A stretch of DNA of 64,000 bases from Convolutriloba macropyga (lineage: Eukaryota). The stretch is taken from NCBI RefSeq assembly GCF_964194025.1, contig NC_134470.1, forward strand, positions 49,600,001-49,664,000, given 5' to 3'. The position numbers and the translations under genes are program-made. Positions within the stretch are counted from its first letter, which is position 1. Every line of letters starts with the position of its first letter. Positions 8,436 through 50,004 of the stretch are shown in pieces. The notes beneath the pieces are model-generated. The model searched no databases and had not been told where the DNA came from. It saw nothing but the letters and a program-made list of their open reading frames with translations.

Positions 8436-8739
8436 CCCGGGCCGAGGAATTTGGCCAAAATTATGTAAGATCAGCGGCAACTAGCGTTGACCAGTCGGAA
8501 AATTCACCGCAATTTTCTTACATAATTTTGCGTTGAATGCGTTGAATTTAAAGACAAAATTTCAACGCATTCAGCGCAAAATTATGTAAGAAATGGCGGT
8601 GAATTTTCCAACTTGTCAACGCTAGTTGCCGCTGATCTTACATATTTTGTGTTGAAATTTAGCGTAGATCTTACATATTTAGCGTTGAATTTAGCGTAGA
8701 TCTGACATATTTTTGCGTTGAATTTAGCGTTGATCTTAC

Positions 8740-8860
8740 AAAAAATCAACGCGTAGAACTCTGGGTATGGGACTCGAACCACTGACCTCCTGTTTACTTG
8801 TCGCCTACTCTACCATTGCGCCACCGTACCTTGGTTGCCTTAAGAGCCGCAATCCTTATA
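8740..8860 (-). ncRNA. tRNA-like Pol III unit (pseudo-tRNA / SINE head)
   Basis: 5' end at 8830; A box TGGCGCAATGG at +8 (8823-8813); B box GGTTCGAGTCC (8780-8770); acceptor GGTACGG/CCATACC pairs 6/7; TATAA at -30; T6 at 8745-8740. Anticodon arm unpaired and T stem truncated. Confidence 0.7.
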
Positions 8861-9534
8861 AAACGTAGATCTTACATATTTTGCGTTGAATTTAGCGTAG
8901 ATCTTACATATTTTGCGTTGATTTTAGCGTAGACCTTACATATTTTGCATTGAATTTAGCTTAGAACTTGCAAATATTTCGTTGAATTTAGCCTAGCTCT
9001 TACATATTTTTCGTTGAATTTAGCCGAGATCTTACATAATTTCAGCGTATTCAACACATTTATCATGTGAGAAGTACTGGGAAAATTTAAAAAATTTTGA
9101 AAAAATTTGAATTCCTAAAATGGTCTGAAAAGGTTTTCGCACCGTAAGAGAGTAAATGGTTATTTCTTGCTGACTTCATTATTCTCAATTTTGCAGTATA
9201 GGGGTCAGAACAGTAAAAAAATAATTTTTTGAAAAAAAACTTGAAAAGTTTGAAATCTTCAAATGGTCTGAATTGGATTTTGCACTATAAAAGAGCACTA
9301 AAAGAAGATTTTTTCTGACTTTTTGTTACTCACCTTTGGACTATAGGGTTCGAAATAGTGAAAAAATTAATCTTTCGAAAAAAAAACTTGAAAAAGTTTT
9401 GAAATCGTAAATTACTCTGAAACGGATTTTGCACTATAAAAGAGCACTAAAATGTGATTTGTCTCACCTGTGCAGTATAGGGTCGAAACAGTTAAAAAAT
9501 TTTTGGCAATGAATTTTTGGAAAAACGTTGAAGA

Positions 9535-10704
9535 TTGGCAATGAACGCGTTGAATTTACGTAAGATCTACGCTAAATTCAACGCTAAATATGTAAGATCA
9601 ACTCTAAAATTCAAGGCTAAAAATGTAAGATCTAAGCCAAAATTCAACGCAAAATTATGTAAGATTGGCGTTGAATGCGTAGAATTTATGTAAGATCTAG
9701 GCTAAAGTCAACGCTAAATATGTAAGATCTACGCTAAAATTCAACGCTAAAAATGTAAAATCTACACCAAAATTCAACGCAAAATTATGTAAGATTGGCG
9801 TTGAATGCGTTGAATTTATGTAAGATCTACGCTAAATTCAACGCTAATTTTGTAAGATCTACGCTAAAATTCAACGCTAAATATGTAAGATCTACGCCAA
9901 ATTTTAACGCAAAATATGTAAGATTGACGTTGAATGCGTTGAATTTATGTAAGATCTATGCTAAATTCAACGCTAAATATGTAAGATCTACGCTAAAATT
10001 CAACGCTGAATATGTAAGATCTACGCCAAATTTTAACGCACAATATGTAAGATTGGCTTTGAATGCGTTGAATTTATGTAAGATCTACGCTAAATTCAAC
10101 GCTAAATATGTAAGATCTACGCTAAAATTCAACGCTAAATATGTAAGATCTACACCAAAATTCAACGCAAAATTATGTAAGATTGGCGTTGAATGCGTTG
10201 AATTTATGTAAGATCTACGCTAAACTCAACGCTAAATTTGTAAGATCTACGCTAAAATTCAACGCGAAATATGTAAGATCTACGCCAAATTTTAACGCAA
10301 ATCATGTAAGATTGGCGTTGAATGCGTTGAATTTATGTAAGATCTACGCTAAATTCAACGCTAAATATGTAATATCTACGCCAAAATTCAACGCAAAATT
10401 ATGTGAGATTGGCGTTGAATGCGTTGAATTTATGTAAGATCTACGCCAAATTCAACGCTAAATATGTAAGATCTACGCTAAAATTCAACTCTAAATATGT
10501 AAGATATACGCCAAATTTCAACACAAAATATGTAAGATTGGCGTTGAATGCGTTGAATTTATGTAAGATCTACGCTAAATTCAACGCTAAATATGTAAGA
10601 TTTACGCTAAATTTTAACGCTAAATATGTAAGATCTACGCCAAAATTCAACGCAAAATTATGTAAGATTGGCGTTGAATGCGTTGAATTTATATAAGATC
10701 TACG
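9535..10704 (+). repeat. Minisatellite of ~32-bp monomers with ~129-130-bp four-monomer higher-order repeat
   Basis: Monomers begin tgtaagat; consensus tgtaagatctacgctaaattcaacgctaaata, with tgtaagattggcgttgaatgcgttgaattta about every fourth unit. Confidence 0.95.
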
Positions 10705-17500: not shown

Positions 17501-18329
17501 CAAAATTAAATTACAAAGGATTTGAGTAACTTTTAATTTGTTACGTTGATTCATTGCCATCACCTCCATAGTTATAGAAAATTCTGCAACGCTTCTGAGC
17601 TCAAACCTGATAATCGCATAGTTGATTGAATTCCTGTTCTCTCCAGGAACGGACTGGTCTGCTCTGCGATTGTCTTATGATGCTCCCTCTACTATTAGTT
17701 TTAGTCTAATTAAACATTAAACTGAACTATTAGTTGTAGTTCATCAGGGAATAGAAGATTTTTCCCATTAGGATGATAGAATATTTTTGCCGTCATCAAT
17801 TGCAGTAATCAATTAATACTGTGATAGAGGTTACCATTGAAGCAACAGTCAATTCAGACAGTCAATGACTTCACTCCGAACTGAAAAAAATCGAGTGTAA
17901 TTTAGGCTTGTGAGAGAGAGAGAGAGTGTGTGTCGTTTACTAGTTTGGGATTCGCTTAATGACATAAAAGCGAAGAAAAAACAGAGTAATCGAACGCGTG
18001 TGTAAGACAGAGTAATCAACACTCCCGTATGAAACCACATAAGGAGCATTTCCTGGACTGTCATGACTGGTGGATTCTAAAAATAGCTTTATCTCGAACG
18101 ACAGAAAATATCATGGACCTTAGAAATTCATAAGCCGAAAAATTACCACTGAGGTTGCCTTCTGATCAAGCAACAGAAGAACCTATAAAAAAAATTTTTT
18201 AAAAAAAACTAAATTATTTTTTTTCTTATTCCTGATCATTTATATATATATATATATACCTGTTCAGATAATATAGGCGTAAAATGAGGTCCTTTCAAAA
18301 AAGGATAACCCAAAACAAAATGAAACACT

Positions 18330-19005
18330 TCAATCAAAATTGACAGCTCGGGCAGATGTTTCTTTGAAAAAAATATTACGGAATCACTACTATGCTCTAC
18401 TTAAAACATCGAATTTAACAATCTTAAGATATTGCAATAAAAACAAACTGAAATTTACTTAGAATGAAAAAAAATTCAGTCGCAAAAGAAATCACTTTTA
18501 AGATGTCAAAGGAAACGAAAATGCTTGATTTTTTGCACATGTAACTCATAAAAAAGCAATTGAAAATTCTACGGGATAGCAGCGTATTTTTGAAGCATTT
18601 ATTAAATTTTTTACATACAAAATGAGATGCTTTGAAATTGCGCATCGAAAAAACAACAGAATCAAAAATTTCAATCAAAAACGTCAATAAAAATTGAAAG
18701 CTTGGACAGATGTTTCTTTGGAAAAAATTATTACGGAATCAGTACTATGTTCTACTTAAAGCATCGAAATTACCAACCTTGAGATGTTTCAATAAAAACA
18801 AACTGAAGGTTACTTAGAGTGAAAAAAAATCCCTTGCGAAAGAAATAATTTTTAAGGTGTCAAAAGAAAAAAAAGTCTTGTTTTTTGGTACATATGATTC
18901 ATAAAAGAGCAATTGGATATTCTACGCGGAAATCAGCGCATTTTTCACGCATTTATTAATTTTTTTACATACAAAATGAGATGCTTTGAAATTACGCATA
19001 AAAAG
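18330..19005. repeat. Diverged tandem duplication, ~355-bp unit
   Basis: cagatgtttctttg..tattacggaatca..aaatgagatgctttgaaatt occurs twice (from ~18330 and ~18684). Confidence 0.9.
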
Positions 19006-23871: not shown

Positions 23872-24500
23872 GGCGAACAGACAAAACAGTCCCAGACAAA
23901 ACAGTCTCAGACAAAACAGTCCCAGACAAAACAGTCCCAGACAAAACAGTCCCGGACAAAACAGTCCCGGACAAAACAGTCCCGGACAAAACAGTCCCGG
24001 ACAAAACAGTCCCGGACAAAACAGTCCCGGACAAAACAGTCCCAGACAAAACAGTCCCAGAGAAAACAGTCCCGAATAGCAAAATATTCCCAGACAGAAC
24101 AGTCCCAGACAAAATAGTCCCAAGAAAGCAGACAAAACAGTCCCAGACAAAATAGTCCGGACTAAAGATAAAGTTAAGCATATTCGCAACAATTAACAAC
24201 GAAACCCTTAAGTTATTCATGTGATTATATTTCATTGAACAAATATTAACATATTTGTTGCTAAATAATGTATTTTGTATAACGAGTTTTTGGTTTAATC
24301 CTAATTCATATCAATTAAAAGAAATGCATTCAGAAGCTTATCTCATAGATTATGCTTGATAATTGTTTGTAGATTAGATTTACAATTGTTGCGATACTTA
24401 TTTGGGACTATTTTGTCTGTCTGCTTTCTTGGGACTATTTTGTCTGGGAATATTTTGCAATTTGGGACTGTTTTGTCTGGGACTGTTTTGTTCGGAAACG
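23872..24500. repeat. Foldback/MITE-like element with 15-bp minisatellite arms, in the sialyltransferase intron
   Basis: (acaaaacagtccc[a/g]g)n at ~23879-24160 and inverted gggactgttttgtct copies at ~24400-24500. Confidence 0.85.
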
Positions 24501-33300: not shown

Positions 33301-34559
33301 TATGGTCTTTGACTTTTGGGACAATTGATGGCGTTGTAATTTTATGGGACCAAATATATTTGAAACGTTCTATCATAATGATCCAATAGAGGTTTGCATT
33401 TCATCACTTTGTGGGACACACTTTTTTGCCTTTTTAATTGATATTTACATAATCAAGTTAACAACGAAGCGGCAGCCAATCGCATGCCGAACTTAATATA
33501 ATTACATCTTGCCCTCGTCTTCTTGTTATCGAATAGTTCTTTTTTGCAACTTTAGAGGTTTTGATTGTTTTCTAGATTTTGGAAACCATCAGCATTGGTT
33601 AGAATTTTTTTTGAAATACTATTCATCTTTTCATTAAAATTCAGAAATTGATACATACTCTAATTAATTGATCTCAAGACCATTGCTAAGACAGTTTGTT
33701 ACTACATTTTTTTGTAGGAAATTAAAAAAACTTGCTAACGTAGCTAAGCTTCAACCAGAATGTTCAATATGAAAATAAGAATTTATCTAGTGAAGACTAA
33801 GGACAGCCTTATTTTGAACCTATTTAGTCAAATTCTAAAGAATTTCGTACTTTTTCATGGATAATTGACAACTTATAGCATGAAAAACAATTAAAATTGA
33901 TCTTCAGATAATTAATGTGACCCAGGTTTGTACGTTTTTGTGACAGAATTCATAGTTTGCGGTAAATAGTTTGCGACATCCGACAGTAGTATATATTTCC
34001 CGCGAAATTTTCAAAACTAGCTTCATAAATGTGACAATGAAGAAGAAATAAATATTTCCGATCTTGTAATTTGTACTTTGAAAAGAAACCATCAATAAAC
34101 TTTTTTGTAAATCAAAAATAAATAGATTTGTCCTCACTAGTCGTAAAATTTTCTAAGAAAGGCAAATTGTTTACATTAATTGTCGAAAGTTTGCTGCACC
34201 AGAATATGAAGGCTGCAATTGTTGAAAATGACTGACTGTTTTCGTTTGATATCCCCCAGAAAGCAGGCATCAACTGATAGTTGATAAGAAAACGAATAGG
34301 AAATGGCAAAAAAATGTGGAATTTTGGATGTTTTAACCTCATTACATTGAAAATTTGTTAGTTCACGTTCGAGGCTGGCTAACATCAATGAAGAAAGTTG
34401 TCCTTGCACAAACACATAGCTTGTTCAGAGTTAATCAAAATTGAACAATTTTTAGTATTAACAAAATCTTTACTTAATTCCGAGAAAATTTTCCCTATTC
34501 ATTGCAACATTGCCGTCAATAAACTTCCGAGTCCATGAGACACTCAGGGGTCCAAAATA

Positions 34560-36590
34560 AAGCTTGCACTGAGAAACTATTTTTTTTATTTATAACAAAA
34601 AACACAGAATTTGTCGAATGATGTCAGCTCTCAAAACAAATTTCAATGGGTAATTGCTGAACATGGAAAAACTCCAAAAATATAAAAACAATCTGAATTA
34701 CCTCAAAAATTAGGAAAAAAGATGATTTTAATTGTTAAAGGGGAATTTTGGTATCACGTGAATAGTTTTTTAAAATGCAAAATTACAAAATTTGATATAC
34801 TTTGAACAGACTACGTTCTGATTTGAACAAATTACTACTGAAATAAAACAAATTTTTATCAGAGAACCCTCATAATTTTTGCCAAAAACTGAAAACTAAA
34901 CTTGAATGTCAGAAAGATTTTCTTATTTTTATTGAGAAGCACATTTTTTAACGGAGCCATTGACAAGACGTCTGAGCCAAAATGCAAAAAATTAGCAAAC
35001 AATGCAAAAAAAAGATAATTCTTAGAAAAAAACAAGTTAGAACAATAAATTAATACAATAACTTAATACAAAAAAGGTAAAAACAAGTCACTAAGTCACT
35101 AAATCTCATCAACCATAGCTTTCGAATCCTTTCTTGCTAATATTTTGAAATGAGTAAAAAGCATCTTGGAGTCCATATACTATAACAAATTGACCACAAA
35201 ACAAACTTCCTTCGGTCAGGGGTTCAAAAAGTGGTTTCAGTGAGAATATATCTTTTTTAAATATAACTCAAAAAGCTTACATTTAAAGGTTTCTTTATAG
35301 GTTTTTTCTTAAATAAAACTCTCAAAGGTTATATTCAAAGGTTGCACTGAGAATATATTTCTTTAAAATGTAACTCTCAAAGCAAATTTCAATGTTTAAT
35401 TGCTGAAAATGGAAAACACTAAAATATTAAAGCAACCTGAGTTACCACAAAAATTAGGAAAAAAGATATTTATTGTTAATTGGGGTTTGGTTATCACGTT
35501 AATAAATTTTGTAAAAAATTAAAATTAGAACAATTGATGTATTATGAACAGATTATGTTCTGAGTTGAACAAATTGCTACTGAAATAAAACACATTTTTA
35601 TCAGTAAATATTCATAATTAATGCAAAAAAAAATAAAACCTAAAGACAAAAAAGTTTTTCTTATTTTCTAGGTAAAGCAAAACTTTCTTTAAAGAAACAT
35701 TGACAAAACGTCTGAGCCAAAATGTAAAAATTAGCAAAAAAATCCGAAACAAGTTAATACATAGAAAAAAATAGGTTAATGCACTAATTTAAAACAAAAA
35801 AAGATATTAAAAAGTCACTAATTCACTAAATCTCATCAGCCATCATTTTAGAATTCTATAATGCTTATATTTCAAAATGATTGAAAAGCAGCTTCGAGTC
35901 CATATACTATATTAAAACGACCACAAAACAAACTTCCTTAAAACAAACGACCACAAAACAAACTTCCACAAAACAAACTTCCTTTGATCAAATGTTCAAA
36001 AAATGCTTGCTACTGAAAAAATATTATTTAAAAAAATAACAAAAGACACAGAAATTGTCGAAAGATGCCAGTTCTCAAGCAAATTTCAATCTGCAATAGC
36101 TGAAGATGGGAAAACTCCAAAAAGATGAATACAATCTGAGATACCTCAAAAATCAGGAAAAAGATTATTTTTTGGGTATCACAGGGAGTTTGGGTATCAC
36201 ATAATGATTTTTAAAATGCAAAATAAAAAAAAATTAATGTACTTTGAACAGATTATATTCTAATTTGGACAAATTGCTACTGATGCAAAACAAATTTTTA
36301 TCAGAGAACCTTCATAATTTTTGCCAAAAACTGAAAACTAAACTTGAATGTCAGAAAGATTTTTTTATTTTTATTGAGAAGCACATTTTTTTAACGGAGC
36401 CATTGACAAGACGTCTGAGCCAAAAAGCAAAAATAAGCAAACAATGCAAAAACGATAATAAAAATTCACTAAGTCACTAAATCTCATCACCCATTAATTT
36501 CAAATCTTATAATGCTCATAGTTTAAAACGAGTGAAAAACAGCTTCGAGTCCATATACTATACTAAAACAACCACAAAACAAACTCCCTT
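34560..36590. repeat. Three diverged tandem copies of a ~650-780-bp AT-rich unit
   Basis: Repeated landmarks: ttgc(t)actga, caaatttcaat..gctgaa, cgtctgagccaaaa, gagtccatatactata..accacaaaacaaact (copies begin ~34560, ~35340, ~36005). Confidence 0.85.
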
Positions 36591-37247
36591 CGTATTTGGC
36601 ATGAATGATGTCGTTTATAGTTCGCTAGTGACCCTTAACTTAAAGGACGCGTCCTACGCAATTTACCTATTAATATGTCAATTTCGGTCAATTTTTGCAA
36701 AAGAACTAAAATTCTAGTGGGAATCACACATAAATCCACCGCATTCACATTTAGCGTTAAAATTTGTCTCCTTTGCGGCAAGAGAAAAATAACGACTTTC
36801 TGATTATAGTACCGCTCCCAGCTTATGATGGCTAGTATCTAGAGTGTACAGCCGTTCCAATTACCGTAATCAACATAATTTTAGGGTGGGTATAATGGCA
36901 CAGGCTCAAAAAAGATTTTTCACTAATAGTTAGCCCTGATTGCTACGCGTTTGTTTCTGGATTCGGGTTATTCCAGATGTAAAACAAGAGTTTAACTTCA
37001 GTCTGAAAGTTTGACCTAAATGCCAGAAATTGTTCTCTCTGAAGATACCCCTACTTTGAACCATGGAAATCCAAAAGTCAACTGAAATTGAAGAGTTTGT
37101 GCACTAAGAGATAATATACGTTTCAAATATATGTATGGTCAGGTATATGGTTGCCACTTTTGTATGACGTCATATATGGCCTGCATATGGTTGCCAAAAA
37201 TTATCTATGGTGGTCAACCCGGGCTTTAAAGAGACAATAATTGCAAC

Positions 37248-37389: not shown

Positions 37390-38607
37390 CTGAAAAAGAC
37401 TAATAATTAATGCAACACAGAAGCGCGAAACGTGAAATATCTCATTAGGATCGTGCTAAAATTCCTAAAATGTATTGTTTCGGACTCAATATGTTATGCC
37501 CCGAACTAGAGTTAATGTATTGTTATATAGCACTTTACTATGTAAAAAGAGCACGTGCGCCTTGGGAGCGTAAAAGTTATATGCCCCAGGATGATGGTGC
37601 GGGAGAGGGAGGGAAAACAGAATAGATCCAACTCCTATCCTGATCAGTGTGAAATTTGGAAGCAACATCCAAGATCGGGGAGTTTTTCGACAATAACTTT
37701 TTTTTCAAAAGGAAGACCGAATCATGAAGTTTCAACATGTATTATAGTTACAATTTAGCAAACCAAGATCTTGCTACGTTACGTATGAAAATTTTTTGGG
37801 AAAATTTTGTCGAATTTTTGCATACTTCCTGTTGACAAAATTGTATTTTTGTAAATATTTGACTCTTTTGTGAACTTTCTCTGTTTTTCAAATAACTATG
37901 TTCGCACTGCTGTCTTCCAAGAGTTGTCCTAAAACTGCTCCTCCTATTTCTTTCCAAGATTATGCAGTTTGCCATACGAGATCTTATATGATCTGCATCA
38001 GCAAAGAGCCGATAAGATAAAAGGTAAGAATGCGCCGAAAAATTCAGCACAGAAAAACCTTTCCTGGTAATTCACTTAAATGTGTAAGAAATGCGCTGAA
38101 CTTTTAGGAATTTTTTTTCAAATTTTTTGTTTATTTGAGCGCCTTTCAGCGCAATTCTACAAAATGATTTAAAAATGTTAAAAATTGTTAAAACGATCAG
38201 GAAGCAACGGCGGATTAATGAAAATATAGCCAACACCCCGAAGAGTGCGATTCAAGACTGTGGCAAGACGAATAAAGAAATTAAAGAAACATTGACGTAG
38301 ATGGGACGAAAAGAGCTTAGCTGTCCAAAACTTTCAGAGAGTTTATAAATAAAACTTCTTTTTTCAAAGCATTGTTGCAAAGTATATGAGCTAAATTTTT
38401 GTGAAAAATGCGGATTTTAGAGCCCTTTTACTATAATTTTCGCAATGTTCTCCGATACGGCTTGCAAAAATTTTCCACATATTACAGTTATCAAAAGTTT
38501 GAAACTGCTAGCCAATCAATTTGCTATGCGAGATTATGCCTCTTCGAGTTTGAACGAGTCTTCAAAAAATAGTTTTAGTTTCTGGACAGTTTCCATCTTT
38601 CAGGTTC

Positions 38608-38843
38608 TGTTAATGCCCAGTATTAACTTCTCCATTATATTGTAAAGTGCATGCCCTGTTTTGTTGATTGTGTATCACTTTGTAATGTGATAAGGTTATT
38701 GAAAGTCATGTAAGAAGAGAATTGAGTTGTAACTTTTGATGTCATGAAACCAAACAAGTAAACGAAGCAATTGAAACTTGAAATAATGAGAACAAAGGAG
38801 ACATGATACGACAAAGAAGGAAGGATAGACAACGTCGTGATCA
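38608..38843 (+). repeat. 5' LTR
   Basis: Matches 49578-49813 except for one substitution (aacaaaggag vs aacaaaagag). Confidence 0.98.
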
Positions 38844-38846
38844 TAT

Positions 38847-38857
38847 TGGCGCTTCGA
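38847..38857 (+). promoter_or_regulatory. Putative primer-binding site TGGCGCTTCGA
   Basis: TGG-initiated motif 3 nt after the 5' LTR; primer tRNA not identified. Confidence 0.65.
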
Positions 38858-39411
38858 TGATTTCCACCAACAAATGAAGCAAGTTTACCTCAAGGAGATG
38901 AGACAGCAAGGAAGTGGTCCTTCATGAATGTGTAATAGGAGTGCTACAACTGTTGGTAACGAGTCAATTTTTTTCTTGGTCAACGTCAACTCTGTGAGTA
39001 CAAAATATTGAAAATAACAGTCGGGAAGTAGTCAAATGGTTTGCTCGTATTCAAGGTCAGGAGGAAGCATCATTTTGAGAGTTGAAAGCCGTTCTCTACG
39101 GAAAACTATCAAATAAGCTTCGGGGCCTATTGTAAGTTGGTAGTGGTTTAAAAAAAACGAATTGACGGATAGACAATTCAAATATTGGGTTGAGGAACTA
39201 TATGCCAAATTGAACACCGTTTTTTAGTTTGAATTTTTGAGAAAAGCTAGGGTACAAAAACAAGCTCTTATTGGTGACATAATTTTGTAGTTGTTGTCAT
39301 TAAAAAATATATATTTGAACTATTCGGTTCCTGTGAAGTTTTTTCAAAGGCTACAATACCAAGACGAGCATGATGTTTCTTTGGAACCAGTCTTGCACCG
39401 CTCCCCTTCGA

Positions 39412-42400
39412 CCCAGCTGCCATCGCAAGCTCCAGTAGGCGCCTCCTACTGACTTCATTGACACTTAGTCGTGTCATAGCTCCATCAGTCGTGCGCCAAC
39501 GCACTCCATCACCCAAGCTGCCATCGCCAGCTCCAGTAGGCGCCTCCTACTGACTTCATTGACACTTAGTCGTGTCATAGCTCCATCATCCGTGCGCCAA
39601 CGCACTCCATCACCCCAGCTGCCATCGCCAGCTCCAGTAGGCGCCTCCTACTAACTTTATTGACATTTAGTCGTGTCATAGCTCCATCAGCCGTGCGCCA
39701 ACGCTCTCCTTCACCCCAGCTGCCATCGCCAGCTCCAGTAGCCACCTCCTACTGACTTCATTGACACTTGGTTGTGTCATAGCTCCATCAGCCGTGCGCC
39801 AACGCACTACATCACCCCAGCTGCCATCGCCAGCTCCAGTAGGCGCCTCCTACTAACTTTATTGACATTTAGTCGTGTCATAGCTCCATCAACCGTGCGC
39901 CAACGCTCTCCTTCACCCCAGTTGCCATCGCCAGCTCCAGTAGCCACCTCCTACTGACTTCATTGACACTTGGTTGTGTCATAGCTCCATCAGCCGTGCG
40001 CCAACGCACTCCATCACCTCAGCTGCCATCGCCAGCTCCAGTAGGCGCCTCCTACTGACTTCATTGACACTTAGTCGTGTCATAGCTCCATCAGTCGTGC
40101 GCCAACGCACTCCATCACCCAAGCTGCCATCGCCAGCTCCAGTAGGCGCCTCCTACTGACTTCATTGACACTTAGTCGTGTCATAGCTCCATCATCCGTG
40201 CGCCAACGCACTCCATCACCCAAGCTGCCATCGCCAGCTCCAGTAGGCGCCTACTACTAACTTCATTGACACTTAGTCGTGTCATAGCTCCATCAGCCGT
40301 GCGCCAACGCACTCCATCACCCCAGCTGCCATCGCCAGCTCCAGTAGGCGCCTCCTACTGACTTCATTGACACTTGGTTGTGTCATAGCTCCATCAGCCG
40401 TGCGCCAACTCACTCCATCACCCCAGCTGCCATCGCCAGCTCCAGTAGGCGCCTCCTACTAACTTTATTGACATTTAGTCGTGTCATAGCTCCATCAGCC
40501 GTGCGCCAACGCTCTCCTTCACCCCAGCTGCCATCGCCAGCTCCAGTAGCCACCTCCTACTGACTTCATTGACACTTGGTTGTGTCATAGCTCCATCAGC
40601 CGTGCGCCAACGCACTCCATCACCCCAGCTGCCATCGCCAGCTCCAGTAGGCGCCTCCTACTAACTTTATTGACATTTAGTCGTGTCATAGCTCCATCAG
40701 CCGTGCGCCAACGCTCTCCTTCACCCCAGCTGCCATCGCCAGCTCCAGTAGCCACCTCCTACTGACTTCATTGACACTTGGTTGTGTCATAGCTCCATCA
40801 GCCGTGCGCCAACGCACTCCATCACCTCAGCTGCCATCGCCAGCTCCAGTAGGCGCCTCCTACTGACTTCATTGACACTTAGTCGTGTCATAGCTCCATC
40901 AGCCGTGCGCCAACGCACTCCATCACTCCAGCTGCCATCGCCAGCTCCAGTAGGCGCCTCCTACTGACTTCATTGACACTTAGTCGTGTCATAGCTCCAT
41001 CAGCCGTGCGCCAACGCACTCCATCACCCCAGCTGCCATCGCCAGCTCCAGTAGGCGCGTCCTACTGACTTCATTGACACTCAACGTGTCATAGCTTCAT
41101 CAGCCGTGCGCCAACGCACTCCATCACCCCAGCTGCCATCGCCAGCTCCAGTAGGCTTCTCCTACTGACTTAATTGACACTTAGTCGTGTCATAGCTCCA
41201 TCAGCCGTTCGCCAACGCACTCCATCACCCAAGCTGCCATCGCCAGCTCCAGTAGGCGCCTCCTACTGACTTCATTGACACTTAGTCGTGTCATAGCTCC
41301 ATCATCCGTGCGCCAACGCACTCCATCACCCAAGCTGCCATCGCCAGCTCCAGTAGGTGCCTCCTACTAAATTCATTGACACTTAGTCGTGTCATAGCTC
41401 CATCAGCCGTGCGCCAACGCACTCCATCACCCCAGCTGCCATCGCCAGCTCCAGTAGGCGCCTCCTACTGACTTCATTGGCACTTAGTCACATCATAGCT
41501 CCATCAGCCGTGCGCCAACGCACTCCATCACCCCAGCTGCCATCGCCAGCTCCAGTAGGCGCCTCCTACTAACTTTATTGACATTTAGTCGTGTCATAGC
41601 TCCATCAGCCGTGCGCCAACGCTCTCCTTCACCCCAGCTGCCATCGCCAGCTCCAGTAGCCACCTCCTACTGACTTCATTTACACTTGGTTGTGTCATAG
41701 CTCCATCAGCCGTGCGCCAACGCACTCCATCACCTCAGCTGCCATCGCCAGCTCCAGTAGGCGCCTCCTACTGACTTCATTGACACTTAGTCGTGTCATA
41801 GCTCCATCAGTCGTGCGCCAACGCACTCCATCACCCAAGCTGCCATCGCCAGCTCCAGTAGGCGCCTCCTACTGACTTCATTGACACTTAGTCGTGTCAT
41901 AGCACCATCATCCGTGCGCCAACACTCTCCTTCACCCCAGCTGCCATCGCCAGCTCCAGTAGCCACCTCCTACTGACTTCATTGACACTTGGTTGTGTCA
42001 TAGCTCCATCAGCCGTGCGCCAACGCACTCCATCACCCCAGCTGCCATCGCCAGCTCCAGTAGGCGCCTCCTACTAACTTTATTGACATTTAGTCGTGTC
42101 ATAGCTCCATCAGCCGTGCGCCAACGCTCTCCTTCACCCCAGCTGCCATCGCCAGCTCCAGTAGCCACCTCCTACTGACTTCATTGACACTTGGTTGTGT
42201 CATAGCTCCATCAGCCGTGCGCCAACGCACTCCATCACCTCAGCTGCCATCGCCAGCTCCAGTAGGCGCCTCCTACTGACTTCATTGACACTTAGTCGTG
42301 TCATAGCTCCATCAGCCGTGCGCCAACGCACTCCATCACTCCAGCTGCCATCGCCAGCTCCAGTAGGCGCCTCCTACTGACTTCATTGACACTTAGTCGT

Positions 42401-43405
42401 GTCATAGCTCCATCAGCCGTGCGCCAACGGACTCCATCACCCCAGCTGCCATCGCCAGCTCCAGTAGGCGCCTCCTACTGATTTCATTGACACTCAGTCG
42501 TGTCATAGCTTCATCAGCCGTGCGCCAACGCAGTCCATCACCCCAGCTGCCATCGCCAGCTCCAGTGGGCTTCTCCTACTGACTTAATTGACACTTAGTC
42601 GTGTCATAGCTCCATCAGCCGTGCGCCAACGCACTCCATCACCCCAGCTGCCATCGCCAGCTCCAGTAGGCGCCTCCTACTGACTTCATTGACACTTAGT
42701 CGTGTCATAGCTCCATCAGCCGTGCGCCAACGCACTCCATCAACCCAGCTGCCACGCCAGCTCCAGTAGGCGGCTCCTACTGACTTCATTGACACTTAGT
42801 CGTGTCATAGCTCCATCAGCCGTGCGCCAACGCACTCCATCACCCCAGCTGCCATCGCCAGCTCCATTGGGCGCCTCCTACTGATTTTATTGACACTTAC
42901 TCGTGTCATAGCTCCATCAGCTGTGCGCCAACGCACTCCTTCACCCCAGCTGCCATCGCCAGCTCCAGTAGGCACCTCTTACTGACTGGATTGACACTTG
43001 GTTGTGTCATAGCTCCATCAGCCGTGCGCCAACGCACTCCATCACCTCAGCTGCCATCGCCAGCCACAGTAGGCGCCTCCTACTGACTTCATTGACACTT
43101 AGTCGTGTCATAGCTCCATCAGCCGTGCGCCAACGCACTCCATCACTCCAGCTGCCATCGCCAGCTCCAGTAGGCGCCTCCTACTGACTTCATTGACATT
43201 TAGTCGTGTCATAGCTCCATCAGCCGTGCGCCAACGCACTCCATCACCCCGGCTGCCATCGCCAGCTCCATTGGGCGCCTCCTACTGACTTTATTGACAT
43301 TTAGTCGTGTTATAGCTCCATCAGCCGTGCGCCAACGCACTCCCACACCACTGCTGCCCTCGCCAGCCCCAGTAGGTACCTCGTATTATACTTTTTCACA
43401 CTTAG
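39412..43405 (+). repeat. Tandem array of 39 complete 101-bp units plus a degenerate partial 40th, in the BEL 5' leader
   Basis: Period 101 (agctgccatcg at 39415, 39516 ... 43251, with two 1-bp deletions). Consensus agctgccatcgccagctccagtaggcgcctcctactgacttcattgacacttagtcgtgtcatagctccatcagccgtgcgccaacgcactccatcacccc. Confidence 0.98.
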
Positions 43406-43510
43406 AAGTACCCTTGCTTACAATACTTGCACTCAAACACATCATCTGTAAGTGCGTGTTCCTATAGTTACCGTCAATTAGCTCGAAAGTCAAAAGCGTT
43501 CAACAGGAAA

Positions 43511-46500
43511 ATGAAAGGACGAAAACAGTCAATCGCCGGCACTATACGGCTCTTCTATAGAAGGCTAAATACGATCGAGGAATTGAAAAATGAGATAGAG
43601 GCTCAAGTAAGTAATAACACTGAAATAGAAATTGTTTCTTTAACGCATGAAGAGTTTAAACGTCTTATGGGAGAAATCGAAAATATAGTTGATGAGTTAA
43701 CGGAATCAGACAATCAGGACGCTGAAGGCCCTTTGGCAGAAGCTGATCAATTCATTCGATTGAAGATGGAAGTAGCCCAAAAAGTGAAGCGACACGAAAT
43801 GCTCCGCCGAACTCTTACTTCTTGTCCAAACAGTGCAGCCTCTACTCAAAGCAATCGAACAACAGCCTCCACAGTAGTTGAGACAAACGCAAGAAAGTCA
43901 AGGGAGCTCACCAATAGCGACAAAACTGGAATTCACATCAGTGAGCCAATTGATGACGAACCTTCAAATACTGAATCATTTTTAGCTGAAAGTTCCGAAA
44001 CTTCTACAGATCAAATTTCAATAACAGCTCCAAATTAGCAGGAAAATTCTGAACCGGTCTTCAGTAGAGACTACACGAACAAAATGTAACTCCAAATATG
44101 GTCCTACAGAGCCCTGCTTCACAGCAAACTGTAATGACCAGTACAATTGTCAATCAGGACGCAACATTACAAAGATCTCTTGAGAGTGGAAACTATTTCT
44201 TTTCTGAAAATACGACGAACATCCACAATTTGCCAACATGCATTACAAGTTTTGTTCATGGATTTGACACAGTTCAAACTACTATGCTACACCCCCAACA
44301 AGGTTCAGTTGCTTGTTCGTCGAGACCTTACTATAACCCTACACCATGGTCAATATCATCATCATGTAATCAATGGCCTACAGCATTCGCCTCCTCGGCA
44401 ATCAGCAATCAATATGTTCAAGCACCTGTTAACTACGAATTACCAGTTTCTGTGTCTCAGCAAAACCATCCAGTCTTTGCAAATCAGTTACCAACTACAT
44501 TAAGTTGGAATTCTAACACAGATCAAGGTCAGTTTAATTACCGGTTTCGAAATCCGCATCGGTCTGTAAAGCTGCCTGACATTCGCATACAAAAGTATGA
44601 TGGTGATCCTTTAAAGTGGAACGAATGGAGCAGCATGTTCACATCTACAATACATAATAACCCTGATATAACAAATACTGAAAGAATGAGCTACCTGCAA
44701 TCCTTCGTCATCGGGCCTGCCAAGGAATGTATATCAGGTTATCTGTGCAATCCAAATTTTTACAAAGATGCGCTAAACGAGTTAAATAGACGCTTTGGGA
44801 ATCCCCAAAACGTGGTTTCTGCACTTACTCAAGAACTAGAAGCCTGGCAGCGTCCCCAAGCCAATGACCATAGAGCTCTAATTAGCTATGCAGCACTCCT
44901 GCGGAAAATAGTTCAAACATTTCTAGCCCATGGCTTCAACGCTGACTTGAGTGCTACATATCTACTTAAATTAGCACGTGATAAACTCCCAAACTCGCTC
45001 AAAATGAAATGGAGCGAGCACACCATTGACAACAATATTCAAAATCCAGGAATTTTGGAGTTCTCGTAATGGATGGACCGACACTCTCGCGCCTGTGAAC
45101 AATTGCAGGAAACCATTCCTCAAAACAGCAACAACAATGGATTTCAAGGAAACATTCGAAGAAACAATTCTACGGTTTCTAACAGCTCACAAAGGAATCA
45201 GTTCTCAGCTAACGTGTACAGCAACTCCAACAATCAACAAAGACCCAATGATCGAAGGAATAATCAAAAGTCATTTCAGACAAGCAATAACTTCAGCAGA
45301 AAACAAAACATTAACAATCAACAACCTGGTTTTTCAGGGAATCAAAACCTAAATGCAGGGAAAAACGCATCAATCGTCACAAAAAATGTCAAAACGAAAT
45401 GCCCCTTTGATCAACAAGAGCATTATATAGGTCGATGCCAACAGTTCAACAAGGTTGATGTAGCTAGACGAAACTTGGAGGTCAAAAAACACTCACTCTG
45501 CTTTAACTGCTTGAGCCCAAGCCACTCTGCTAAAGAATGCGCATCAAAAGTCGTTTGTCGTCATTGTAATGGAAAGCATCATAGTTTATTGCATGACCCC
45601 GACAAACAAAAGAAGAGAACCGAGACAACAAACCTGACAGATGTCGAACTCCCGCTGTGCGAACCGTTGAACAGAAAAATGAATAGTACAGTTGATACAC
45701 CAACCTACAACCCTGGCTTTCCAGCAAAATCTCGCAATCAGCTGCAAGTCATTCCGGTTACACTTTTTGGCGAGAACAAGGAAAAAGTGGAATGCTACGC
45801 CATACTAGACAACGGTAGTACAATCTCTTATGTGCTTGATACAAATGCAAACGGTATCAATGCCCCAAAGGCAATTCAGTTTGATTTCAATGTCATGCAC
45901 GCCTTTGACCATTCAGTTATCAATGCGAATTTGGTCCGCCTTGATATTGGTAGGTATAATGATGATGAACCACTCTTCAGATTGAACTATGTGCATTCAA
46001 TTAACAACTGGAAATTTAGCGACGCACCAGTGCAAGAATTAAATGAGACTTGCGCAACCTACTCTCATTTAAAACATATCAAATTTCCAAATCTGGGCAA
46101 CAACAAAATTCAGCTTTTGTTAGGAGTTGATGCGACACAGTTCATTCTCGAAAGAGAATTTCTTCAAGGACCGACCGGAACTCCTTTCGCTATCAGAAAC
46201 CTTTTAGGCTGGACAATAACGGGACCAATGAAACGCAAAGCAGAGGAATCATATCACGCGGAAACAAACCTTCTGTCACATAGCTACAGACCATTCGATA
46301 AGGCTCTGGAAAATTTGGAAGTTTTGGAAGTTTTTGGAAAATAGACAACGCCGGTACTGAACCAGAAGAACCCAAAAATTTTTCAAAAGACAGCGAATCA
46401 GCTCTCGACATTTTCGAGAAGACAATTCGTCACAACCGTACCAGATATGAAATTGGTCTTTTGTGGAAGAATAACGTCCAGTTACAAAACAATTATCCAG

Positions 46501-49500
46501 TAGCGAAAGCCCAACTAAGCAGCCTGCAACGTCGGCTTTCCAAAGATCATCAGTTGAGTGTTCTATACGATGCAACCCTGCAAACTGATATCGAGAAAGG
46601 TTACGTAAAGCCAGTGGTCTTTGAGAATCCGCAGCCAGAAAGAATATGGTACCTCCCTCACCATCCGGTTAGTAACCCCAACAAACCAGGAAAAGTAAGA
46701 CGAGTAGCCAATGCCGCCTCAATTTTCAAAGGCCAATCGCTAAACACAAATTTATTGTCTGGGCCCGATCTGATAAACAATTTGATTGGTATCTTACTTC
46801 GTTTTCGCGAAAAACCAATAGCCGTAATGGCTGATATAGAGGCTATGTTTATGCAAATTGCCATAATCCCTGAAGATCAATCTTGTCTCCGTTTCTTGTG
46901 GCCAACAGATCAAACTATCAGGCAATATCAGTACACAAGGCTTATATTCGGTGCACGTTGTTCACCAGCAACTGCAATATTTGTCTTACAACGCACTGCT
47001 CAAGACTTTGCCCCAAGACAGGAAATTATTGACCTTGTCAACAAAAGTTTTTATATGGATGATTTCGTTCATTCCTTCCAAAGAACTGAAGATGCTCAGT
47101 TGTGTGTCTCTGATCTAAAGTCGACTCTCCAGAAGGGTGGTTTCAATTTAACAAAGTTTGTAACCAACGAGCCGAAATCTTTGAAAATGCTAGAATCCGA
47201 ACACATCGAAAGTGAAACTGAAGACCACCGAGTTCTTGGACTGCTGTGGAACTCCCCGAGTGATATAATTTTTCATAAAAAATTGTCGAAGATAGATCAA
47301 GACGCTTCCCAGTACACTTTGCGCAAACTGTTGTCCTTAATAGCTTGCCTGTTTGAACCACTGGGGATAATAGCTCCCATCGTAATTACACTGAAAATAA
47401 TCTTGCAAGATACCTGGAAAGAAGGCCTATCATGGGACGACTTGCTTTCTTCGTCAAAACGGCAACAAATCCAGGACTGGATTGACAAATATCTTGATTC
47501 ACCACAAATTCAAATGCCAAGCAGCTTATCACATTTTGATATCAGTAGTGGTACCAATCAGCTACATGTGTTTTGCGACGCATCACAGTTGGCATACGGT
47601 GCCGTTATATACATTAAAACGTCAAATGACAAAGAAACTTCCTCCAACTTTGTCATTGGGCGCTCTAAGGTCGCGCCCCTAAAGCAAATAAGCATTCCAA
47701 AGTTGGAATTACAAGCAGCTGTCCTTGGGTGTCGTCTTTGGCAATTCGTTGCTCAGCACCTATCCGTTCCAGTCAAAGAGACGATCTTCTGGAGTGACAG
47801 TACTGCTGTTCTGGGCTGGATAAATTCAAAAGAAAAACTTAAGACTTTCATCGCCAACCGCGTTCAGGAGATTAGAAACCTTACGGACACCAGCTGTTGG
47901 CGACACATAATTGGTAAAATAAATCCGGCCGATCACATATCTAGAGGATTTTTACCAGAAGACGTTAACTCCTTGTGGTTGTCGCCACCAGAGTTTCTGA
48001 AGCACCCTGAGAAAAATTGGCCTTCCTTCTTTGCTCCTCAAGAAGCAACGCACTCGATGCAACAGACTTCAGCACTGGAACCTGTTTTCAACATTGAGAA
48101 ATTTTCAAAATGGACCAGACTTTTGAGAGCAACAGCCAGAGTTTTCCTGTTCATAGATAACCTAAAGACAAAAGAACGCAAAGCACTAGCCTTGAAAGAC
48201 ATTGATAAAGCCAGAAATCATCTCTTTCAAGTTTCACAGCTCAACTCGTTTTCTGGAACTGTTAAGGATCTTATAAACGGAAAAGATCTGCAGAAGAAAG
48301 ACCGCCTGTTGTGCTTATCACCTTTTGTGAAAGATGGCATATTACGCGTCGGTGGAAGGACAAAAAGAAGCTCTTTGCCTCTTGACGCAAAGCACCCGTT
48401 AATTTTGGACTCAAAAGAAGCAATTGTAAAACTCTTTATTCAGAAATGTCACGAAATTTGCATGCATCTCGGCGTAGAGTATACCAGGAATTACATCCAG
48501 CAAAGATGTCACATCATTGGAGTGCGCGAAAACCTTAGAAGCCTTGCTATCAAATGCTTCGAGTGTCGAAGGTTTCGAGCAGTAGGCCTCCAGCCACCAA
48601 TGGCTGACCTCCCAGAGGTTAGGTTTCAAGACAGTTCTTTGCCTGCAGCCTTCACAAACGTTGGGTTGGATTATCTTGGACCATTTGCAGTAATGCATAG
48701 AGACAAAGAAGTAAAGACATACATCTGCCTCTTTACGTGCCTCGTCACGCGAGCCATTCATCTGGAACTAGCAGAAGACTTGTCAACTGACAAATGCATC
48801 ACAGCAATCAGACGATTTATCTCAAGACGTGGCCAGCCGCGAGTTTTGATGTCTGACAATGCGACAAACTTCTTGGGATCCCGTAAGCAACTACGACGAC
48901 AGCCGCTTCAACTGGACCACGATTTCATCAGAAACAACCTTCTCAACCAGTCCATAGAATGGAGACTCAACCCACCTTCTGCACCTCATTTTGGTGGCGT
49001 GTGGGAGAGACTCGTCCAAGTAGTTAAACGAGTTCTCCTCATCAATCTTGGCTCCGCAAAATTGACACCTGATGTTTTTTCAACCATTGTCACGGAAGCG
49101 GAATGTCTTGTGAACTCCAGGCCATTGACTCACGTGAGGAGCGACAACAAGGACGACGACCCTCTCACGCCTAATCATTTCCTCTTGGGACGACCCTTTG
49201 CGAATGTGCCAACACGTCTCTTTCAAGAGTCAGCCAGTCTGAAGTCGACATCATGGACCCAAGTCAAACAGCGCCTGCAACAGATCTGGAAACGACTGCT
49301 TCAAGAGTACGTCCCCACGCTGAATCAGAGACGAAAGTGGACTTCAAAAGAAGCTGCTCTGGAAGTGGGCGATGTGGTTTGGCTGCTGGAGGAGTGGACT
49401 CCCAGGGGAATTTGTCCACTAGGACGTGTCACCAGGATTTTCACCAGACCCGACAAAACCGCTAGGTCTTGCGAATTAAAAACAGCTTTAGGTTTTTTAA

Positions 49501-49547
49501 CCAGACCAGCCGTTAAGCTGCAACATGTGTACCCCAAACCCCCGTAA
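43511..49547 (+). pseudogene. BEL/Pao gag-pol polyprotein, disrupted (TAG 44036, frameshift ~44080, TAA 45067, frameshift ~46320)
   Basis: DUF1759-like LPDIRIQKYDGDPLKW; three Zn knuckles (e.g. CFNCLSPSHSAKEC); protease LDNGS; RT YLPHHPV/ADIEAMF/YMDD; RNase H FCDAS/IPKLEL/NPAD; integrase GLDYLGP/SDNATNF/GGVWERLV. Confidence 0.95.
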
Positions 49548-49577
49548 GGTTAGGGTTAGGTTTTTGGGCCCCGAGGA

Positions 49578-49813
49578 TGTTAATGCCCAGTATTAACTTC
49601 TCCATTATATTGTAAAGTGCATGCCCTGTTTTGTTGATTGTGTATCACTTTGTAATGTGATAAGGTTATTGAAAGTCATGTAAGAAGAGAATTGAGTTGT
49701 AACTTTTGATGTCATGAAACCAAACAAGTAAACGAAGCAATTGAAACTTGAAATAATGAGAACAAAAGAGACATGATACGACAAAGAAGGAAGGATAGAC
49801 AACGTCGTGATCA
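49578..49813 (+). repeat. 3' LTR
   Basis: Direct repeat of 38608-38843, preceded by gggccccgagga. Confidence 0.98.
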
Positions 49814-50004
49814 GGTTCTTTAAAGTGACTTGTCACAATATTTAGAGGTCAGATATCACATTATAAGCGTTCAGATCATGTTCTTAACGGCTTCGACACT
49901 GATTTCTATCAGCAATTAAAAGATTTTTTCAATGGTCGTTTTTTGTAGTCCTATGGAAAAACTTGGCTGAAGTTCAGGTCTTATCGGCTTCCTATAGAAC
50001 ACAC

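Follow-up and report, generated by a model that had tools for sequence, protein, structure and literature searches.

A BEL/Pao element with a repeated leader

The window examined here is a stretch of 64,000 nt from the acoel Convolutriloba macropyga (contig NC_134470.1, positions 49,600,001 to 49,664,000). It carries on its + strand an 11,206-bp retrotransposon (38608-49813) with a large tandem array of 101-nt units between the primer-binding site (PBS) and the gag gene. The element belongs to the BEL/Pao group of long terminal repeat (LTR) retrotransposons, and its closest pol homologues share the domain set given for the last gag-pol piece in Table 1. The LTR pair was detected by blastn self-comparison, with the array masked, as 236-bp direct repeats with one mismatch (99.6% identity), ending in TG..CA and flanked on both sides by the 5-bp target duplication GGTTC. 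An earlier note on this DNA had proposed a recent BEL/Pao insertion. The single difference between the LTRs and the duplication agree with this proposal, which has to be corrected in one respect: the gag-pol region of the window copy is split into four open reading frames (ORFs). The breaks consist of a frame change (44038-44098), an in-frame stop (45067-45069) and a further frame change (46344-46461). The single long gag-pol frame that this copy lacks is found in a sister copy with identical LTRs, where an uninterrupted gag-pol of 2,020 aa lies directly behind an array of 25.5 units. The transposition-competent form of the family, as deduced from this identical LTR pair and open gag-pol, would include the array.

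Table 1. Features of the BEL/Pao element and its target site in the window
Feature	Position	Strand	Basis or remark
Target-site duplication GGTTC, left copy	38603..38607	+	same 5-mer at 49814-49818, abutting the LTR ends
5' LTR, 236 bp, TG...CA	38608..38843	+	blastn self-match to 49578-49813
Pre-array leader, 568 nt, AT-rich, 9 ATG	38844..39411	+	77-100% conserved at >=40 genomic places
PBS-like TGGCGCTTCGATGA	begins 3 nt past 5' LTR	+	read from sequence; tRNA match a candidate only
Array, 39.5 units x 101 nt; C 38%, G 18%; 0 ATG, 188 CAT	39412..43405	+	Tandem Repeats Finder (TRF), composition, fold
ATG-free unique spacer, array to gag start	43406..43510	+	conserved at 37 places of the genome
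gag-pol piece 1, N-terminal Gag; ATG context AAAATGA	43511..44038	+	ORF
gag-pol piece 2, DUF1759 Gag domain; frame differs from piece 1	44098..45069	+	Pfam PF03564, E = 5e-19
gag-pol piece 3, frame of piece 2 behind stop codon; one CCHC zinc knuckle	45073..46344	+	ORF
gag-pol piece 4: reverse transcriptase (YMDD), Pao peptidase_A17/RNase H region, integrase, DUF5641	46461..49547	+	PF00078, PF05380, PF00665, PF17921, PF18701
3' LTR	49578..49813	+	self-match to 5' LTR
Target-site duplication GGTTC, right copy	49814..49818	+	flanks 3' LTR

The array is described by TRF as a repeat of period 101 with 39.3 copies, 92% matches and 0% indels between 39412 and 43376, and a final degenerate unit extends it to about 43405. 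It begins 568 nt past the 5' LTR and the adjoining PBS-like site, stops 105 nt short of the ATG of gag (43511) and makes up 35.6% of the element. The extent of the array (39 units in the earlier note, 39.3-39.5 copies here), its placement between PBS and gag and its share of over a third of the element had thus all been given correctly by the earlier note. A coding role, which that note denied, is ruled out by a longest + strand ORF of only 61 aa within the array and by a period that is not a multiple of three. The consensus unit contains four hairpins of at least 5 bp, separated by C-rich linkers. Three of them, CAGUAGG-cgccu-CCUACUG, UGACAC-uuaguc-GUGUCA and GUGCG-ccaa-CGCAC, are those already described; the fourth is AGCTG-n7-CAGCT. 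The linker motif (T/G)CCATC, reported before in its RNA form (U/G)CCAUC, occurs three times per unit. No Rfam covariance model matched the segment 38600-40100 at E <= 1.

Presence of the array throughout the family

The genome (1.18 Gb) contains the LTR together with the pre-array leader in at least 40 places, with 77-100% identity. In all 30 other loci that were fetched, located on many chromosomes, the 101-nt array follows directly after the leader, with different lengths and variant orders. The question raised by the earlier note, whether other copies possess the unit, is answered by this invariable presence at the same position with a variable copy number. Likewise, at least 58 units stand ahead of gag in a contig from a separate ENA assembly (pol identity 89%). 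Array lengths deduced from the coordinates of leader end and gag start begin at 5.6 units and extend to intervals of 10-30 kb (up to about 300 units). Four of these 10-30 kb intervals were sampled with twenty 210-bp interior probes, and each of the twenty consisted of units in the correct orientation, with 90-97% identity to the unit consensus. The long arrays checked in this way are still bounded by leader and gag.

Unit-bearing contigs also occur in several public runs, under at least three organism labels. Under a second label, pieces of LTR, leader, unit and gag reach 98-99% identity (contigs compared with L033:1501-3804, runs X8 and X9). Under a third label, almost nothing but the 101-nt unit is present, and the best piece shows 4 differences in 126. 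Close relatives, horizontal transfer or sample cross-talk are all possible sources of these pieces. Contigs from runs of the host itself include diverged unit types that keep GTGCGCCAACGCA and hairpins resembling GACAC..GTGTC while their linkers differ; further unit subfamilies therefore exist.

Two individual copies deserve mention. An old copy on the - strand (G000:C7:12562656-12578263) shows a leader, an array of about 10.5 kb and a gag start, behind which come another array, of about 2.5 kb, and another gag start; the array/gag junction has been duplicated there. In a young copy (G000:C1:26463576-26464024), the match runs about 210 nt into the pre-array leader past the 3' LTR, which suggests either two elements with a common LTR or a truncated second copy.

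Inheritance and probable growth of the array

Nine arrays were rewritten as strings of unit variants. Different copies have several blocks in common, namely the start A-D-H, the internal blocks K-E-F-A and A-J-I and the terminal unit M, and they differ from one another by duplications or deletions of whole blocks, as in one copy where a seven-unit block is present three times. The first and last units are fixed across copies. The interior is a mosaic of older variants, in which the closest relative of a unit is as likely to stand in a different copy as in the same array. Units differ from each other by about 8%, against 0.4% between the LTRs of the window copy. From this disparity and from the shared variant blocks it follows that a heterogeneous array has been copied whole through RNA, and has not grown from one unit after insertion. 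The inheritance of these heterogeneous units and blocks between copies requires the array to be part of the genomic RNA, as the earlier note had assumed in placing it in the RNA leader. The array travels by retrotransposition and changes through duplications and deletions that involve several units.

Older insertions have longer arrays. Among 20 copies, LTR-LTR divergence and array length are correlated with a Spearman coefficient of 0.80 (P = 2e-5). Copies with an LTR divergence K of up to 0.005 carry 5.6-64 units (0.5-6.5 kb), two recent insertions having merely 5.6; those with K above 0.03 carry 80-300 units, up to about 30 kb. Leaders of 20-30 kb are unlikely in transposition intermediates, and the arrays therefore probably keep growing after insertion, in the manner of a satellite. 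Alternatively, the older lineages may already have been longer at the start. Growth with insertion age in decaying copies is the behaviour of a satellite-like DNA and not that of the scaffold proposed by the earlier note.

Composition and predicted folding of the sense strand

The array is devoid of ATG. In the 3,994 nt of the window copy, 34-46 occurrences are expected and none is observed, while its complement CAT occurs 188 times; across the nine arrays (26.5 kb) there are 3 ATG and 1,138 CAT. From the last ATG of the pre-array leader to that of gag, 4,135 nt are free of this triplet. That a consensus unit lacks ATG would not by itself be improbable. The variation among units is more informative: in 260 young units, 9 substitutions create an ATG where about 51 are expected (P = 0.004 in a class-matched permutation). 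As far as sequence variation can tell, ATG avoidance is a sense-strand constraint of the translation type, although taken alone it could be a passive consequence of the location in a 5' untranslated region (UTR).

The potential of the unit to fold is also far above chance, in keeping with the structured unit of the earlier note. Each unit contains 23 bp of stem in perfect hairpins of at least 5 bp, while its dinucleotide shuffles (n = 1000) contain 1.8 +/- 3.0 (P < 0.001). A three-unit segment folds with z = -3.5 on the + strand and z = -1.8 on the - strand. The sense strand is rich in C (38%) and poor in G (18%), and 14 of the 19 G of the unit are located in hairpin stems.

Leader arrays of sister families

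The same ENA assembly supplied sister elements with 56-68% identity in pol. Large arrays occupy the same position in their leaders, and LTR pairs place these arrays inside the elements. The unit types are different: 112 nt in about 7-9 copies, 43 nt in 31-38 copies, 30 nt in 100-110 copies (L064:3494-6531 and L107:1333-4645), units of 24-43 nt containing TGACCT-n5-AGGTCA, and 21-nt repeats with CAAGGTCA. On the sense strand, most of these arrays have a high content of C (0.27-0.45) and a low content of G (0.14-0.26), and ATG is almost absent from all of them except one copy of the 30-nt array. A significant excess of hairpins characterises the 112-nt units and two units of 43 nt.

Between two families, the 112-nt units can be aligned without gaps. 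Over three predicted hairpins 93.9% of cells are paired, a value reached by none of 500 shuffles. Three pairs have changed in a compensatory manner (A-U to C-G, U-A to C-G and G-C to A-U), the loops are invariant (CCAA and CCAG/CCAA), and the polymorphisms present in more than one unit are G.U wobbles only; four outer pairs have been lost in one family. Coming from two lineages, these comparative data give real support to a structure of the sense strand. The 101-nt and 112-nt units resemble each other in architecture, in a hairpin with a CCAA loop and in several 8-9-mers (CTCCATCAG, GACTTCAT, CAGCTGC and CAGTAG..CTACTG), the latter of which may be shared by chance in sequences of such biased composition.

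Some sister repeats have features of their own. The 30-nt unit has a period that is a multiple of three, is T-poor and lacks hairpins, and gene callers place long ORFs on both of its strands. The arrays nearest to gag with TGACCT-n5-AGGTCA or CAAGGTCA are located at L063:7198-7814, L065:6199-6764, L064:6615-7111 and L108:4177-5814. These two motifs are reminiscent of nuclear-receptor sites or half-sites, and they provide a lead for a role at the DNA level. The CRE-like repeats of L066 were considered as a further leader array and ruled out, being located outside its LTRs.

Origin and possible role of the array

Taken together, these observations are best accounted for by a hypervariable minisatellite of the 5' leader, proper to this BEL/Pao family, and this account is on balance probable. 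Lying between the LTRs, the array would be transcribed in the genomic RNA and copied by reverse transcription, and new copies inherit older variants of the unit as a mosaic in which the first and last units are fixed. Blocks of units would be gained or lost through template switching between repeats during reverse transcription, and through unequal exchange, and the integrated array would continue to grow in the manner of a satellite. Meanwhile the unit would be kept free of AUG and poor in G, as a series of short sense-strand hairpins between C-rich linkers. If it is functional, it would most likely act as a multimerised cis-acting module of the leader RNA, compatible with the translation of gag. 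The CCHC-containing Gag of the element or a host RNA-binding protein are candidate partners, for packaging, export or ribosome entry. A function of the array as RNA is plausible and unproven. For its part, the suggestion that the array serves as a decoy or as a precursor of unit-length RNAs found nothing in its support.

A bolder version of this account can be formulated for the whole BEL/Pao clade. The array would then be a hitherto undescribed multivalent element of the leader RNA, built from a repeated module of three or four hairpins, that gathers many copies of Gag or of a host protein for packaging or condensation, or else an AUG-free landing pad for internal ribosome entry that bypasses the AUG-laden first 570 nt, with the number of units as a dose reshuffled at each cycle. 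This version is unlikely.

Several results weigh against a constrained RNA module. Within the 101-nt family, 386 in-register units from about 30 copies were compared at 26 putative pairs. The roughly 10,000 pair cells comprise 9,304 consensus pairs, 4 compensatory pairs, 227 G.U, 173 A.C and 326 other mismatches. The number of compensatory pairs is about that expected by chance, the bias of G.U over A.C is weak, and stems vary just a little less than other positions of the unit (3.7% against 6.0%). The units are about 95% alike, which gives the comparison low power; within the family, selection on pairing is not demonstrated. The covariation that does exist comes from the sister 112-nt units, that is, from two lineages and three events. 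It is not simply transferable to the 101-nt unit since homology between the two is unproven: MAFFT, a covariance model and pairwise alignment give three different registers, with scores not above those of shuffled sequences. In the shuffle test, moreover, no hairpin excess appeared in the 30-, 21- and 24-nt units or in one of the 43-nt units. Arrays span 1.5 to 300 units and are longest in decayed copies, so that most of their length is unneeded. Finally, the 9 ATG of the pre-array leader are at chance expectation, and simple cap-dependent scanning therefore fails to explain the ATG desert behind them. Ribosomes may reach gag by internal entry, by shunting, from a downstream start site or after splicing. 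Searches of the public runs found none recorded as RNA, and no splice-like joint removing the array was seen in contigs of four runs searched with a short-array sister copy, although contigs cannot show transcripts. A constraint on the sense-strand RNA is partly supported, by ATG depletion, by the confinement of most G to stems and by the compensatory and G.U changes of the sister families; the paired positions of the 386 units add only the weak bias of G.U over A.C.

The array could instead be a functionless by-product of replication. Hairpins would stall reverse transcriptase and promote template switching, thereby duplicating a hairpin-bearing stretch of leader, which would be tolerated and then drift upward in size. 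The wide range of copy numbers (1.5 to about 300 units), the two recent insertions with just 5.6 units, the growth in decayed copies and the lack of a compensatory excess within the family all fit such a process. So does the occurrence of unrelated unit types, some of them free of hairpins, at the same leader position of sister families, which points to a repeat-prone site and not to a conserved signal; abnormal strand transfer has been proposed as a similar origin for the Ogre repeats (PMC7004042). A merely tolerated sequence is not expected, however, to be present in all 30 copies, to show a deficit of ATG-creating variants in young arrays (P = 0.004), to confine most of its G to stems, or to conserve loops in sister families while the stems undergo compensatory or G.U changes, even if ATG avoidance could be passive in a 5'UTR. 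A by-product has a real but lesser chance of being the correct explanation. An error of assembly, or a satellite acquired by this single copy once it had inserted, has a negligible one. Long tandem arrays are indeed error-prone in assemblies, and the unit count of the window copy was read from an assembly. The same array nevertheless stands at the same position in 30 of 30 other copies, with differing lengths and variant orders, and it recurs in the separate ENA assembly and in contigs of several public runs under at least three organism labels, which rules out this explanation as far as existence and origin are concerned.

It is also conceivable that the array works as DNA, by assembling palindromic sites for transcription factors or chromatin proteins into an enhancer, an insulator or a silencing target, as in gypsy, ZAM, Tirant, accord and copia. 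An LTR of 236 bp leaves little space for enhancers. The unit consists of short palindromes with spacers of 4-7 bp, in addition to CAGCTG, and sister arrays repeat the presumably nuclear-receptor-like TGACCT-n5-AGGTCA and CAAGGTCA. Within the family, it is the stem sequence that is conserved rather than the pairing, and there is a direct precedent in Drosophila, whose retrotransposons have UTR minisatellites composed of protein-binding sites that act as enhancers or insulators (PMC7168160, PMC8872304). This explanation does not account, however, for the strand asymmetries, namely the excess of C (38%) over G (18%), the location of most G in stems and the better folding of the + strand. Nor does it account for the sister families, in which spacers are conserved between arms that have changed and stayed complementary, and in which polymorphisms are limited to G.U. 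The TERM motif of ZAM, accord and Tirant is matched in a 7-nt core alone, and by eye. A role at the DNA level is considered distinctly improbable.

Comparison with known repeated UTRs

The earlier note had seen in the array a candidate for an undescribed system. This can no longer be maintained, since tandemly repeated UTRs of LTR elements are known (PMC8872304, PMC7168160, PMC7004042). In Drosophila, 19 of 49 families of LTR retrotransposons (39%) possess tandemly repeated 5'UTRs (PMC8872304, PMC7168160), and in gypsy, ZAM, Tirant, accord and copia these repeats function as arrayed sites to which proteins bind (PMC7168160, PMC8872304). A motif called TERM, which occurs in the 5'UTR repeats of ZAM, accord and Tirant, binds RpL22 in vitro (PMC8872304). 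The linker GCCATCGCCAGC of the present unit (for example at 39419-39432) has the core CCATCGC in common with this motif; with a match of 7 nt the resemblance is weak, and a TERM/RpL22 site in the unit is not convincing and a lead at most.

With the repeated 5'UTRs of Drosophila, such as the Su(Hw) array of gypsy and those of ZAM, Tirant, accord and copia, the present array shares the nature of a minisatellite between PBS and gag, of variable copy number and transmitted with the element. The Drosophila elements are mostly of the Ty3/gypsy or copia type, whereas the present one is a BEL/Pao element in an acoel. Their arrays measure a few hundred bp; those of the present family measure 0.5-6.5 kb when young and as much as about 30 kb when old. 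They are also documented DNA-binding sites, whereas the present unit displays sense-strand features (hairpins, absence of AUG and scarcity of G). A second parallel is provided by the Ogre/Tat repeats of plants (Macas 2009; Vondrak 2020, PMC7004042), which are equally hypervariable, differ in unit between related families and expand from short arrays. Repeats of the Ogre 3'UTR seed plant satellites and are proposed to have arisen by abnormal strand transfer (PMC7004042). They belong, however, to the 3'UTR of Ty3/gypsy elements, and their long arrays are free-standing near centromeres, whereas the present array occupies the 5' leader and its verified expansions are flanked by leader and gag.

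Two further likenesses concern the RNA. By analogy, the location between PBS and gag, the several short stem-loops and the CCHC motif of the encoded Gag may be compared with the packaging (Psi) and dimerisation initiation site (DIS) leader of retroviruses and retrotransposons. Psi regions are single-copy, whereas the present module is repeated 5-65 times in young copies and lacks covariation within the family. The differentiation control element (DICE) of 15-lipoxygenase is a C-rich repeat of 19 nt in a 3'UTR, hairpin-free and bound by KH-domain proteins. Tandem C-rich motifs in a UTR are common to both cases, but the present units with (U/G)CCAUC carry hairpins and their protein partner is hypothetical.

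The array is thus a large and structured variant of the known repeated UTRs of LTR retrotransposons. Its distinct aspects are the lineage (BEL/Pao, in an acoel), the scale (kilobases in mobile copies and tens of kilobases later) and the sense-strand signatures of the unit. Repeated leaders of LTR elements are known mainly from Drosophila and plants, and are usually taken for regulatory sites that act as DNA, or for material from which satellites arise. Here a single genome offers a dated series, from fresh arrays of 5 units to old ones of about 30 kb, along which one can measure directly how a satellite arises from the leader of a transposon. The AUG desert of 4.1 kb, the placement of most G in stems and the conserved loops of sister families raise the question of how gag is translated and what binds the hairpins. 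In an under-studied lineage, moreover, the same site of the leader holds unrelated arrays in several families. Should the RNA interpretation fail, the array would still be a clean and unusually large case of a known phenomenon.

Other features of the window

No tRNA gene was found in the 64-kb window, which contains 223 N. A complex tandem array unrelated to the one described above occupies 8634-10704, with a period of about 130 bp, many copies and inverted partial copies at 8634-9055. Self-comparison of the window reveals other direct, tandem and inverted repeats at 34550-36592, 18319-18999 and 23878-24495. About 26 kb upstream of the window start, on the - strand, lies a fragment of the same retrotransposon family, consisting of a pol end and an LTR (G000:C3:49573289-49574131).

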